Virus record (IMG/VR): IMGVR_UViG_3300030099_004448
Coordinates: 174,938-238,937 of that record
Length of the DNA stretch: 64,000 nucleotides
Reading direction: 5' to 3' (one strand)
In this document: positions 18,095-47,725 of the stretch, piece by piece
Layout of the letters: every line of letters begins with the position of its first letter
How positions within the stretch are numbered: the stretch's first letter is position 1
The notes under the pieces: model-generated
Seen by the model: only the letters and a program-made list of their open reading frames with translations
Told to the model about the DNA's origin: nothing
Databases searched by the model: none
Translations under genes and position numbers: made by a program

Positions 18095-18358
18095 ATGGGT
18101 AGCGTGAAAGTATTAATTGAAAACTGCGATGCAACCGCAGCTGAAGATAGGGGGTTGCCGAGTAACTCATACTTGGTAACATACCTAGATGAAGAACAAA
18201 ACAAAAAACAAGATATTACTCAGGGTGGACAAGTAGACATCTTTGATTATTATTACGACAAGTATAAGAATCTCCAAGCCTTGGATTGGACAAATGGTAC
18301 AGTGAATCCTAAACTGTACGGATACAAACCAGCCGAAGAAAAAAAGAAAAAAAGATGA
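18095..18358 (+). CDS. hypothetical protein
   Basis: GAGG RBS; IFDYYYDKY motif. Confidence 0.72.
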   Translation: MGSVKVLIENCDATAAEDRGLPSNSYLVTYLDEEQNKKQDITQGGQVDIFDYYYDKYKNLQALDWTNGTVNPKLYGYKPAEEKKKKR

Positions 18359-18573
18359 GTGAAGGATTTAAGGGTTTTACTGATAAGGAGGATCAAGAGT
18401 TAAAACTCAATATCCGTACTAGTGAAATCGACAAAATTATCAAACAGTATAAAAAACTGAAGAAGTATCAAAAGTCTTCCATACACGAAATCGCCAAACT
18501 CAGTAATAAACAAACTCAAATTGAAAAACTGGTGAACGAATACGGTATTGATCCAGAGGCGTTACAAGACTAA
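18355..18573 (+). CDS. hypothetical protein
   Basis: 72 aa; ATGA coupling. Confidence 0.7.
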   Translation: MSEGFKGFTDKEDQELKLNIRTSEIDKIIKQYKKLKKYQKSSIHEIAKLSNKQTQIEKLVNEYGIDPEALQD

Positions 18574-18578
18574 AAACT

Positions 18579-18592
18579 GTATCGTCTTATAC
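18579..18592. promoter_or_regulatory. NtcA-like binding site
   Basis: (T)GTA-TCGTCTTA-TAC matches GTA-N8-TAC, 8 nt upstream of the -35 box. Confidence 0.5.
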
Positions 18593-18600
18593 CAAATGGG

Positions 18601-18629
18601 TTGACTATATAGAATATAGGAGTTATAAT
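18601..18629 (+). promoter_or_regulatory. near-consensus sigma70-type promoter
   Basis: TTGACT-17 nt-TATAAT. Confidence 0.8.
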
Positions 18630-18638
18630 ACTCCAGTA

Positions 18639-18870
18639 CGTTCATCCCACTTTCGGGTGGGACGCAAGTAAGTCGCGGAACGGAGCGTTCATCCCATGTT
18701 AGAACTACTTTTTTATTCTAGTATGACCTGCACTGATGCTGATGCATTAATGCTCAAAATCAAGGCACAACAACATCTTGAACCTAGAATTCAGATCGAA
18801 CTGGTCGAGACCATAAAGGAATCTGTACCACAGTGTGATTTCTACTGGGACGCAAACGACTAAAGGAACG
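18639..18870 (+). ncRNA. tandem glutamine riboswitch-like RNA (glnA/Downstream-peptide family)
   Basis: Two copies of CGTTCATCCCA...TGGGACGCAA...GGAACGG; begins about 10 nt after -10 box; precedes YRG-motif peptide. Confidence 0.75.
18696..18863 (+). CDS. 55-aa ORF nested in riboswitch P2 (MLELLFYSSMTC...CDFYWDAND), not in ORF track
   Basis: GGAG upstream; open frame ATG 18696 to TAA 18861-18863. Confidence 0.65.
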   Translation: MLELLFYSSMTCTDADALMLKIKAQQHLEPRIQIELVETIKESVPQCDFYWDAND

Positions 18871-18903
18871 GGCCTTAAAATCCAATTACTTTAGGAAACG
18901 ACA

Positions 18904-19071
18904 ATGAACACACTAAATCTCATCAAAAAGCAAATCGAGAAAGCAGCTGCTCTCCATAATGCACAGATTACTCATACCTCATATCGTGGTGTTGAGTATG
19001 ATACACGTTGTGTAGAGTCCAAGGAGTCTCACGGCACCTTCTGTTATCGTGGTCACACTTATAAGAAGTGA
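18904..19071 (+). CDS. DUF4278-like YRG-repeat peptide (55 aa), not in ORF track
   Basis: SYRGVEY and CYRGHTY motifs; AGGA RBS. Confidence 0.75.
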   Translation: MNTLNLIKKQIEKAAALHNAQITHTSYRGVEYDTRCVESKESHGTFCYRGHTYKK

Positions 19072-19078
19072 GGCAATT

Positions 19079-19174
19079 ATGCAAGCAATTCAAGTAGCAT
19101 CATTAGGCTCTATTTTAAGCATTGCATTTCTTGGTTTACTTTATGGGGAACTCACACTTTTATATAAGAGGTGA
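19079..19174 (+). CDS. 31-aa hydrophobic peptide, not in ORF track
   Basis: GAGG RBS; MQAIQVASLGSILSIAFLGLLYGELTLLYKR. Confidence 0.6.
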   Translation: MQAIQVASLGSILSIAFLGLLYGELTLLYKR

Positions 19175-19177
19175 GAT

Positions 19178-19342
19178 ATGTTGAAGATCAGTTTACATTA
19201 TGATCTTCCAACATATGACCCCCAAAAACACGATCCAGATGAAACATTCGCGTTTTTGACGTATCGTGGAGTACATTATGCTAAGAGGGTTAATTTAAAA
19301 TCCCTTAGCATTCCAAGTTGGAAAGTATTCAAGAGAGGGTAA
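19178..19342 (+). CDS. second YRG-motif peptide (54 aa), not in ORF track
   Basis: GAGGTG RBS; LTYRGVHY motif. Confidence 0.65.
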   Translation: MLKISLHYDLPTYDPQKHDPDETFAFLTYRGVHYAKRVNLKSLSIPSWKVFKRG

Positions 19343-19360
19343 AGAACCCTCTCTTTTTTT
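19331..19360 (+). terminator. intrinsic terminator
   Basis: AAGAGAGGGT-AAAGA-ACCCTCTCTT followed by T tract. Confidence 0.85.
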
Positions 19361-19506
19361 GTATTTTTGTATCAAAGACAACAAACTTAGTAAATTTGTG
19401 TGTAAACCGTAACATTTTTGCTATATAATGATAGAATTAAGGATGGAGAGATGAACTGAAATTTATTCTTTTCGCTATGGTATAAAAACTAAATTGGAGG
19501 TGGAAA

Positions 19507-19764: not shown

Positions 19765-19923
19765 ATGCAAAAAGAAAAACTAAAATTAATCGTCCGAAAT
19801 CTTAAGTCACTGGTTGACCTCTTGGAGTCTGAAGTCTATTCCGATCCAGACGCTTATGTGGTAAAATCAAAGACAAACACCTATACAACTAGTGACAACG
19901 ATGACGACGGATACCCAGACTAA
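19765..19923 (+). CDS. small hypothetical protein (52 aa), not in ORF track
   Basis: MQKEKLKLIVRNLKSLVDLLESEVYSD...DDDGYPD; late promoter at 19743. Confidence 0.7.
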   Translation: MQKEKLKLIVRNLKSLVDLLESEVYSDPDAYVVKSKTNTYTTSDNDDDGYPD

Positions 19924-19930
19924 AGATTCT

Positions 19931-20593
19931 ATGACAAACCAAATCAAACTTATCGCCCTAACTCAAGGTGCAGGTGAACTTCTTGAGAAAACGGCGCAGG
20001 AAGTTATTTCGTATGTCGCTCGTGTGAGCAATCCAAACAATCAATTAAACTTTGATACTTCTGCAGGTCTCCTCAAGTATTGTATCAAACACGAACACTG
20101 GTCGATCTTTGAACAGGCCTATATGACTCTGGAGATCAATACGACCAGAGCTATCGCGGCTCAAATTTTGCGCCATCGCTCATTTACATATCAAGAGTTT
20201 TCCCAGCGTTATGCTGCGTCTACTTCTCTTGACCCAATCAAGATGCCCGAGTTCCGTCGTCAAGATACTAAGAATCGTCAGAACAGTATTGATGATATGG
20301 ACGAATTTGAGATTCAAAGACTGCAACTGCAGACACAAACTCTATTCGACTCCGCAACTGCACTGTATCAACAGATGTTAGATCGTGGCGTTGCAAAGGA
20401 GTGTGCTCGAAATATTTTGCCCTTGGCCACGCCAACAAGAATTTACATGACGGGATCATGCCGTTCATGGATTCATTATATCAATCTGAGATCTGCTAAC
20501 GGTACGCAGAAAGAACACATGCAGATTGCAGAGGGATGTCGTGAGATTTTTGTCGAACAATTCCCAGAGATTGCAGCTGCTTTAGAGTGGTAA
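19931..20593 (+). CDS. thyX: FAD-dependent thymidylate synthase
   Basis: H.SIFE, RAIAAQILRHRSFTYQEFSQRY (RHRx7S), KECAR..LP, Q.EH. Confidence 0.95.
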   Translation: MTNQIKLIALTQGAGELLEKTAQEVISYVARVSNPNNQLNFDTSAGLLKYCIKHEHWSIFEQAYMTLEINTTRAIAAQILRHRSFTYQEFSQRYAASTSLDPIKMPEFRRQDTKNRQNSIDDMDEFEIQRLQLQTQTLFDSATALYQQMLDRGVAKECARNILPLATPTRIYMTGSCRSWIHYINLRSANGTQKEHMQIAEGCREIFVEQFPEIAAALEW

Positions 20594-46834: not shown

Positions 46835-47016
46835 GACCAGAAACACGAAAGTCAATGGAAATGCTTTGGTCTGCAAAGTGGAATCTTCCCACAGCAGCAA
46901 AACATGCAAATCTGACCAACAAAGAGATGAAAATTACTTTCAATGAGTATTGTTCATTTCATCCTCCGACCTGGAATATTAAATTAGATGACGAGGGACT
47001 GTCGCCTATTGGTTAA
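46831..47016 (+). CDS. cyanophage hypothetical protein
   Basis: MRPETR.SME.L..AKWNLP.AA; stop lies inside tRNA-Ile. Confidence 0.72.
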   Translation: MRPETRKSMEMLWSAKWNLPTAAKHANLTNKEMKITFNEYCSFHPPTWNIKLDDEGLSPIG

Positions 47017-47066
47017 GGCCTGCTCCTTATAAGGGCATGAATCGGGTTCAATTCCCGACAGACCCA
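46995..47066 (+). tRNA. tRNA-Ile (TAT)
   Basis: GGGACTG/CAGACCC acceptor (one A-A mismatch), TGCTC-CTTATAA-GGGCA anticodon arm, TCGGG-TTCAATT-CCCGA T arm. Confidence 0.82.
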
Positions 47067-47070
47067 CCTT

Positions 47071-47155
47071 GCGAGTATGGCGGAATCGGTAGACGCACCA
47101 GACTTAAAATCTGTTGACCACTAAGGTCGTGGGAGTTCAAGTCTCCCTACTCGCA
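47071..47155 (+). tRNA. tRNA-Leu (TAA)
   Basis: GCGAGTA/TACTCGC acceptor, CTTAAAA loop, long variable arm, GGGAG-TTCAAGT-CTCCC. Confidence 0.95.
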
Positions 47156-47652: not shown

Positions 47653-47725
47653 GCCCTTGTAGCTCAGCTGGTAGAGCACCGCTTTTGTAAAGCGGTTGTC
47701 GCAAGTTCAAGTCTTGTCGGGGGCT
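47653..47725 (+). tRNA. tRNA-Thr (TGT)
   Basis: GCCCTTG/CGGGGGC acceptor, CCGCT-TTTGTAA-AGCGG anticodon arm. Confidence 0.95.

Follow-up and report, generated by a model that had tools for sequence, protein, structure and literature searches.

Two classes of glutamine riboswitch have been described. In the glutamine-I class (glnA RNA motif, Rfam RF01739), a P1 helix of CGUUC and GAACG closes a three-way junction with a P2 hairpin, an ACGCA linking strand, a loop E formed by AAGUA and GAAG, and a short P3, and the element lies 5' of DUF4278/IF17-like genes. The glutamine-II class (Downstream-peptide motif, RF01704) has the same ligand-binding core sequences in an H-type pseudoknot, in which the 5' CGUUC pairs with the GAACG in the loop of the adjacent 3' hairpin, and is found upstream of short DUF4278 peptides in marine picocyanobacteria. 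Both classes are reported to behave as ON switches (PMC6212724, PMC6698751). Hits to glnA in cyanophages are in the literature, and tandem glutamine aptamers have been catalogued there as 157 independent "pseudo-cooperative" doublets (PMC9964418, PMC2864571, PMC9481103). Here we examined a cyanophage mRNA leader in which two such cores are interlocked and one of them carries a complete 55-codon gene in a hairpin loop, a layout that is common in marine cyanophages.

Sequence elements and related loci of the cyanophage leader

The window, the whole 64,000-nucleotide stretch that was analysed (IMG/VR record IMGVR_UViG_3300030099_004448, positions 174,938 to 238,937), comes from a T4-like cyanomyovirus. 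Its region 18350-19350 has relatives in 420 GenBank phage records, almost all from Synechococcus or Prochlorococcus phages. A strong sigma-70-type promoter at 18601-29 (11 of 12 matches) and an intrinsic terminator at 19331-55 bracket a unit of about 730 nt. The features of this unit, all on the plus strand, are as follows.

18601-18629 (+), sigma-70-type promoter, TTGACT-17-TATAAT; the transcript would start at about 18636, 2-3 nt before the aptamer
18639-18643 (+), a1, CGUUC, 5' strand of the outer P1, pairing with 18866-18870
18645-18662 (+), outer P2 hairpin, UCCCACU and GGUGGGA around a UUCG loop
18663-18670 (+), c1, CGCAAGUA, linking strand (the CGC that lines the P1 groove in solved structures; PMC6698751) and 5' half of loop E
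18671-18675 (+), d1, AGUCG, strand of the shared P3, pairing with 18857-18861
18677-18690 (+), inner P1 hairpin, GGAACGG-AG-CGUUC, in which GAACG (e1, 18678-82) pairs with CGUUC (a2, 18686-90)
18692-18696 (+), 5' strand of the inner P2, UCCCA, whose last base is the A of the nested start codon
18696-18863 (+), nested 55-codon gene (phrog_504), filling the inner P2 loop and reading through the 3' strand of P2, c2 and d2
18846-18850 (+), 3' strand of the inner P2, UGGGA (Trp and Asp codons)
18851-18856 (+), c2, CGCAAA, linking strand of the inner core
18857-18861 (+), d2, CGACU, second strand of the shared P3, whose last U begins the stop codon UAA (18861-63)
18862-18871 (+), AAAG (3' half of loop E), then GAACG (e2, 18866-70, 3' strand of the outer P1), then G18871
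18860-18894 (+), platform hairpin, in which CUAAAG (18860-65) pairs with CUUUAG (18889-94) and an inner helix pairs GGG 18870-72 with UCC 18881-83
18893-18906 (+), Shine-Dalgarno AGGA (18893-96, overlapping the hairpin by AG) and AUG (18904) of the downstream gene
18904-19071 (+), DUF4278/IF17-like peptide gene with YRG motifs, phrog_545
19079-19174 (+), 31-codon hydrophobic ORF in the same transcription unit, with no family match
19178-19342 (+), second DUF4278-like peptide gene, phrog_6192
19331-19365 (+), intrinsic terminator that ends the unit

A first-pass annotation, made from the sequence alone, had described 18639-18870 as two tandem glutamine-riboswitch-like units, the second with an intact ORF in its P2 loop, and this observation is confirmed. 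The exact 9-mer CGTTCATCC occurs only twice in the window, at 18639 and 18686, and GACGCAA-N9-GGAACGG occurs only at 18661-83 and 18849-71, against 0.12 occurrences expected by chance. Unit 1 can be folded as a 5-bp P1 plus a 7-bp P2 capped by UUCG, the ORF at 18696-18863 is intact, its ATG starts at the last base of TCCCA, its last codons (W-D-A-N-D-stop) are TGG GAC GCA AAC GAC TAA, and AGTCG (18671-75) is complementary to CGACT (18857-61). By contrast, the extension of P2 that the annotation had proposed (TTAGAA with TTCTA) is not conserved in relatives.

Lack of a covariance-model hit had been set down in advance as evidence against the riboswitch assignment, and the result for the window itself is sub-threshold. 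Rfam searches at gathering and E-value thresholds matched only unit 1, with 28.7 bits for Glutamine-II (cut-off 33, E 7e-5) and 26.3 bits for Glutamine/glnA (cut-off 35; 18637-86 only), whereas no match covered unit 2, even when it was searched alone, or spanned the ORF. A covariance model that we built from eight ORF-less homologues and searched with filters off yielded only two half-matches (32.3 and 12.6 bits), being unable to bridge the 150-nt ORF. The ORF accounts for the shortfall, since natural relatives without it exceed the threshold (see below), and this also explains why covariance-model scans miss most of these riboswitches in phage genomes.

To investigate the conservation of the element, we collected related loci by the nested protein alone (80 IMG/VR loci), by a DNA pattern across the first junction (120 loci) and from four GenBank phages. 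All 80 protein-sampled loci carry the ORF, and every locus that extends far enough carries the aptamer flank, with the 5' half present in 79 and the 3' half in 78, indicating that this protein family is always embedded in the element. c1 is invariant in the 79 protein-sampled loci that extend far enough upstream and matches the Rfam glnA consensus, and c2 is CGCAAA or CGCACA in nearly all loci. A -10 box ends 7-9 nt before the first CGTTC in 121 of the 133 unique relatives that have a -10-like box. A scan of bacterial genome contigs for host copies with a degenerate pattern returned 120 chance matches in unrelated bacteria and none with an aptamer context, so the distribution of the element in cellular genomes was not established. 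The location in the leader of a DUF4278/IF17-like gene is supported by a match of ORF 18904-19071 to PF14105 (E 3.9e-5, 24.4 bits against a cut-off of 25.3) and to phrog_545.

Comparative support for a nested fold

Ten unique relatives present the same order of elements but a 4-16 nt loop where the ORF lies, and eight of these also have a short outer loop, for a total of 84-94 nt. In six of these eight, the Rfam Glutamine model (RF01739) scores above threshold (38.4-43.6 bits) and aligns each as one aptamer, with P1 formed by the first CGUUC and the last GAACG, P3 by AGU/ACU, and the whole second unit as a 38-48 nt insert in P3. RNAalifold predicted the same five helices on the eight sequences unaided. 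The units hence do not fold side by side, but as one glnA-type aptamer with a circularly permuted second core nested in its P3.

To assess this arrangement, we computed pair counts on a 593-column alignment comprising 80 unique haplotypes from 191 loci. The outer P1 (a1:e2) is 100% canonical, with two haplotypes changed from C-G to U-A, and the inner P1 (a2:e1) is 99.75% canonical, with the junction-side pair flipped from C-G to G-C in 17 haplotypes while a1 and e2 stay unchanged; the loop of this hairpin varies between 2 and 4 nt. The pair that flips or changes is the distal one, the flipped pair corresponding to C5:G36, which is distal from the ligand. The flipped bases lie about 12-14 nt apart, and their scatter on the ORF tree (six supported contrasts, P = 0.03) may reflect recombination of one block rather than repeated co-mutation. 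We then tested the prediction that loci with the variant 3' strand GAAACGG should carry CGTTT at the far 5' strand, and a targeted scan found it in all 11 parsable loci, including one with an unflipped inner hairpin.

The absence of compensatory changes in the helix between the units had likewise been named beforehand as a refuting outcome. This helix, P3 (AGUCG/CGACU), is instead 100% canonical over the 80 haplotypes, with G-C to A-U changes at two pairs (5 and 2 haplotypes) and G-U intermediates. The outer P2 shows many compensatory changes. The four closing pairs of the inner P2 are 100% canonical across the ORF in 70 ORF-containing haplotypes, 11 of which change CCC...UGG to CCU...AGG (C-G to U-A), although the helix that closes around the ORF is only 4-7 bp. 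All five helices are thus maintained by compensatory change, with long-range pairs preserved across 150-200 nt of coding sequence.

The interpretation in the first-pass annotation is partly supported by these results: glutamine-riboswitch RNA upstream of DUF4278 peptides, a genuine gene in a P2 loop and the helix between the units are upheld, whereas side-by-side aptamers, each with its own P1 (18639-43 with 18678-82, and 18686-90 with 18866-70) and linked only by an inter-unit P3, are not supported. Several observations agree with that model, since all four P1 strands are identical in the window, the unconstrained minimum free energy (MFE) fold pairs 18639-43 with 18678-82, unit 1 alone gives near-threshold Rfam matches, single units in relatives match Glutamine-II at 34-35.7 bits, and a stand-alone unit with a 1-nt junction scores 35.1 bits in one relative (L152). 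However, both of its P1 helices lose their junction-side pair in 21% of haplotypes, and d2 would have to serve as both strands of the P3 of unit 2. In the remaining 79% of haplotypes all four P1 strands are interchangeable, and a side-by-side conformer is not excluded for them. For 18636-18912, the nested fold has a nearest-neighbour energy of -60.2 kcal/mol, 5 kcal/mol above the MFE (-65.6 kcal/mol), which contains the platform hairpin, while the constrained side-by-side fold is 3 kcal/mol worse (-57.3 kcal/mol). We therefore consider the side-by-side model unlikely.

Both cores retain the equivalents of the residues involved in ligand contact in the glutamine-II structure, where the ligand contacts C1:G40, C39 and G18, G41 pairs with C19, and C5:G36 lies at the far end of the helix (PMC6698751). 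The equivalents of C1, G2 (paired as G2:C39), C39, G40, G18, C19 and G41, and the CGC linking strand, are present in both and invariant or nearly so; glutamine binding was not assayed. The inner core has the connectivity of a circularly permuted glutamine-I aptamer, with P1 closed by a loop and P3 open, and uses the other face of the same P3, so that the two P3 strands swap roles between cores, but it lacks loop E and has only a 1-nt junction before GGAACGG. In the outer core, AAGUA is present (18666-70) and the 3' half of loop E is AAAG in the window and in 44 of 141 unique relatives, and GAAG in the rest, which leaves formation of the non-canonical loop E pairing undecided.

An alternative is that the repeated motifs are recombination scars, or boundaries of mobile gene cassettes in a hyperplastic phage region, rather than a functional RNA. 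The promoter does lie in a stem-loop like the promoter-early stem-loops of T4-type phages, cassette content varies between phages, homing-endonuclease-like insertions disrupt the element in some contigs, and the inner-hairpin variant is scattered over the ORF tree. Nevertheless, the compensatory changes in five helices and in the alternative hairpin, the frozen synonymous sites described below, the Rfam scores of ORF-less relatives and the conservation of ligand-contacting residues make this explanation very unlikely.

The nested gene, the platform hairpin and their possible interplay

Frame conservation of the nested ORF had also been proposed as a test, and the ORF is a real gene by this criterion. 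Interior codon diversity at positions 1, 2 and 3 is 0.40, 0.18 and 0.53, median dN/dS is 0.28 and lengths differ by whole codons; the gene is under protein-level selection. The protein matches phrog_504, a phage family of unknown function, over its full length (E 1e-23, residues 1-55 on profile positions 1-53 of 53), and is annotated in phages S-SM2, S-IOM18 and S-SCSM2R. No Pfam match was found, and its Atlas neighbours are unnamed. An AlphaFold model, obtained from an alignment without the four GenBank-derived rows, is a confident three-helix bundle (pLDDT 82.8) with two conserved Cys and no significant fold match in the PDB.

The last five codons, by contrast, have essentially no third-position diversity (0-0.03), pointing to an RNA-level constraint. 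It could be argued that this conservation reflects a functional WDAND motif at the C-terminus, with the resemblance to an aptamer half being secondary, since W51, D52, A53 and D55 are invariant or nearly so in the protein alignment. We regard this as very unlikely, because third positions of these codons do not vary while interior third positions have a diversity of 0.53, the same nucleotides occur in a non-coding context in ORF-less relatives and in unit 1, and the Trp codon covaries with the bases before the start codon (UGG with CCC, AGG with CCU).

In 40 of 194 loci, including phages S-IOM18 and S-SCSM2R, the outer P2 loop also holds a gene (phrog_6471; mostly 66 aa, up to 75). The first three closing pairs of the outer P2 around the 66-aa gene are 100% canonical, with the motifs UCUC/GAGA, UCUU/AAGA and UCCU/AGGA. 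The stop codon of this gene forms the 3' strand of P2 and hence covaries with the bases before the start codon (UCCU-AUG with UAG-GA, UCUC-AUG with UGA-GA, and UCUU-AUG with UAA-GA). Of the 194 loci, 139 are like the window, 38 have genes in both loops, 9 have none, 2 have a gene in the outer loop only and 6 are unresolved or incomplete.

Downstream of the core, CU(G/A)AAG, which comprises the last two bases of P3, the stop codon and loop E, pairs with CUU(C/U)AG just 5' of the Shine-Dalgarno sequence of the DUF4278 gene. Six of six pairs are canonical in 138 of 141 unique sequences; the A of stop UAA always faces U, and the G of stop UGA faces C or U. An independent-pairs test yielded seven contrasts in the same direction and none in the other, and the inner helix, which uses the last Gs of GGAACGG, also covaries. 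This hairpin cannot coexist with P3, loop E and the outer P1. Its presence in the MFE fold is the expected regime for a ligand-stabilised alternative, and the arrangement fits an ordinary glutamine ON switch.

Taken together, we consider it likely that the first 235 nt of this mRNA form a double glutamine sensor in a nested arrangement. The comparative data establish the architecture, the alternative hairpin, the coding status of the nested ORF and the overlap of its start and stop with the sensor; the regulatory steps that follow are inferences. In this view, glutamine would stabilise the nested fold and free 18889-96, switching the IF17-like peptide genes ON. The same fold would bury positions -10 to +1 of the nested gene, so that this gene would be translated best when glutamine is low. 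A 30S footprint on the start unavoidably covers the P1 and P2 strands, and it is established that 30S binding there and the folded sensor are physically incompatible, but that the folded sensor blocks 30S access, and the direction of any control, are likewise inferred. Ribosomes reaching the stop codon, which lies inside the switch, would unfold both the sensor and the platform hairpin, resetting or overriding the switch; if they open the downstream ribosome site, the downstream genes might be made at both high and low glutamine. The toggle and ribosome-reset mechanisms suggested in the first-pass annotation are likewise inferences.

The ORF might instead be a passenger, parked in a loop that tolerates insertions of a working switch, its overlap having no regulatory meaning. 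P2 loops vary from 4 to about 40 nt in ORF-less forms, several gene families occupy the loops, phage genomes are compact, and ORF-less versions keep the same platform hairpin. On the other hand, the AUG lies exactly 10 nt after the first base of the inner CGUUC in 54 of 58 unique starts, with no room for a ribosome site of its own; the GGAG in the hairpin loop upstream is lost in the flipped variant, so there is no conserved Shine-Dalgarno sequence. Moreover, the ORFs never end before the 3' half of the aptamer, their stop codons lie in the switch itself (inner ORF) or in the 3' strand of P2 (outer ORF), and every sampled family member that could be checked is embedded. Whether the nested gene is truly regulated or merely parked is open; we regard the passenger reading as doubtful, and regulation of the nested gene as possible but short of probable.

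More tentatively, a single double sensor might give two opposite translational outputs, with high glutamine opening the ribosome site of the IF17-like peptide genes and burying the start of the gene, or in some phages two genes, encoded in its own P2 loops, and with translation of an embedded gene feeding back on sensing. This would be a riboswitch whose aptamer is split around the gene it represses, and a widespread design in marine cyanomyoviruses tied to host nitrogen status. Riboswitch aptamers are treated as compact non-coding domains, and this locus provides a natural, abundant system for studying how ribosomes and ligand-dependent RNA folds compete, how dual coding constrains a gene, and how cyanophages read host nitrogen status (glutamine) to balance IF17-like glutamine-synthetase regulators against a family of unknown small proteins.

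Comparison with described systems

Full-text literature searches, which did not extend to Ames & Breaker 2011 and Ren et al. 2015, found no description of the nested, P3-sharing fold or of genes inside aptamer loops. The locus is closest to the glutamine-I riboswitch, with which it shares the P1 helix, the P2 hairpin directly after CGUUCA, the linking strand ACGCA (18663-67), a P3 between AAGUA and GAAG (AAAG in the window) and the position 5' of DUF4278/IF17-like genes, and its ORF-less relatives pass the Rfam threshold in exactly this register. It differs in that P3 encloses 181 nt, themselves a permuted second core with a whole gene in its P2 loop, in that the full element of the window receives no Rfam hit, and in that the first base of the loop E 3' half is A, because the stop codon is UAA. 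The glutamine-II riboswitch shares the core sequences and the genomic context, but its pseudoknot topology is contradicted here by covariation. The platform hairpin resembles the glutamine-II P2 in position, but it also pairs with G40/G41 and hence competes with the core rather than being part of it.

As in catalogued tandem glutamine riboswitches (PMC9481103) and in the tandem glycine riboswitch, two homologous ligand-binding cores sit in one leader in front of one set of genes. Here, however, the cores are not independent neighbours, but are nested, exchange P1 strands relative to a linear reading and share one P3 in a pseudo-twofold arrangement, with a single platform hairpin. Group I introns with homing-endonuclease ORFs in peripheral loops, such as phage T4 td with I-TevI, similarly place a protein-coding ORF in a loop of a functional structured RNA, with long-range helices closing around it and with translation and RNA folding interfering with each other. 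At this locus the host RNA is instead a metabolite sensor, and the ORF encodes a small non-nuclease protein whose start and stop overlap the conserved core. Translation of a short leader ORF also remodels the RNA structure controlling a downstream gene in the M. tuberculosis B12 and Mbox leaders (PMC11260477, PMC12810186). Long-range translational coupling in RNA phage MS2 is a further case of this kind. In those systems the ORF lies in the expression platform, downstream of the aptamer, whereas here the aptamer is split around the ORF.

Promoter context and mobile genes at the element

Examination of the region upstream of the element (window 18619-18634), together with the upstream regions of the related loci L005-L204, revealed that the -10 box of the promoter lies inside an inverted repeat (GGAGT-TATAAT-ACTCC in the window; GGTCTATAATAGACC in most relatives). 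This arrangement holds in 111 of 133 unique upstream regions, and resembles the promoter-early stem-loops that mediate cassette shuffling in T4-type phages.

In some contigs (L339, L345, L377, L382 and L384), the whole 5' part of the element, upstream of the nested ORF, is replaced by a homing-endonuclease-like gene (C-terminus ...SHTSIRRWKKSL). Furthermore, a remnant of about 75 nt with the same end sits in the inner hairpin loop of another contig (L167), between the first GGAACGG and the second CGTTC. Mobile genes seem to target this conserved sequence.

Possible additional pairing and variant arrangements of the glutamine element

The GUUCAU sequence in both CGUUCAU motifs (window 18640-18645 and 18687-18692) is complementary to the AUGAAC at the start of the DUF4278 gene (window 18904-18909), and these segments are paired in the MFE structure. 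Among 124 unique downstream genes, 91 begin with ATGAAC. This complementarity could constitute a further mask of the start codon in the unbound state, or be a coincidence.

Variation in the organization of the element was also observed among related loci. L152 presents a three-unit arrangement, in which a stand-alone glnA-type aptamer with a 2-bp P3 (AG-CCGA-CU), located about 250 nt upstream of the main element of this locus (Rfam hit L152:6502-6553, 35.1 bits), precedes a nested pair whose outer loop holds a gene. In L001, L003, L012, L024 and other relatives, an extra structured insert of 25-35 nt (...ACGGAUCC-hairpin-GAGAAGGUUCA...), the role of which is unknown, is present in the loop of the platform hairpin, between GGAACGG and the Shine-Dalgarno sequence. 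The contig harboring one of the ORF-less glutamine elements (L094) also contains a PhotoRC-II RNA motif (L094:1021-1116; 57.1 bits).

Annotation of the locus and other features of the window

In the GenBank record of Synechococcus phage ACG-2014j (L004, locus 561-722), the nested ORF is not annotated, although it is intact and conserved, and the riboswitch itself is not annotated in any of the four records inspected. Beyond the element, the following features were identified in the window:

19079-19174: 31-codon hydrophobic ORF (MQAIQVASLGSILSIAFLGLLYGELTLLYKR) between the two DUF4278 genes.
19892-20593: ORF that reads like a flavin-dependent thymidylate synthase (ThyX).
1278-1350, 46995-47155 and 47653-47725: four tRNA genes, three of them clustered.

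The 31-codon ORF has no family match and may encode a small membrane peptide. The ThyX assignment is based on reading of the translated sequence, which was not searched against any library; at the corresponding place, S-SM2 has td. The presence of the four tRNA genes is usual for T4-like cyanophages.
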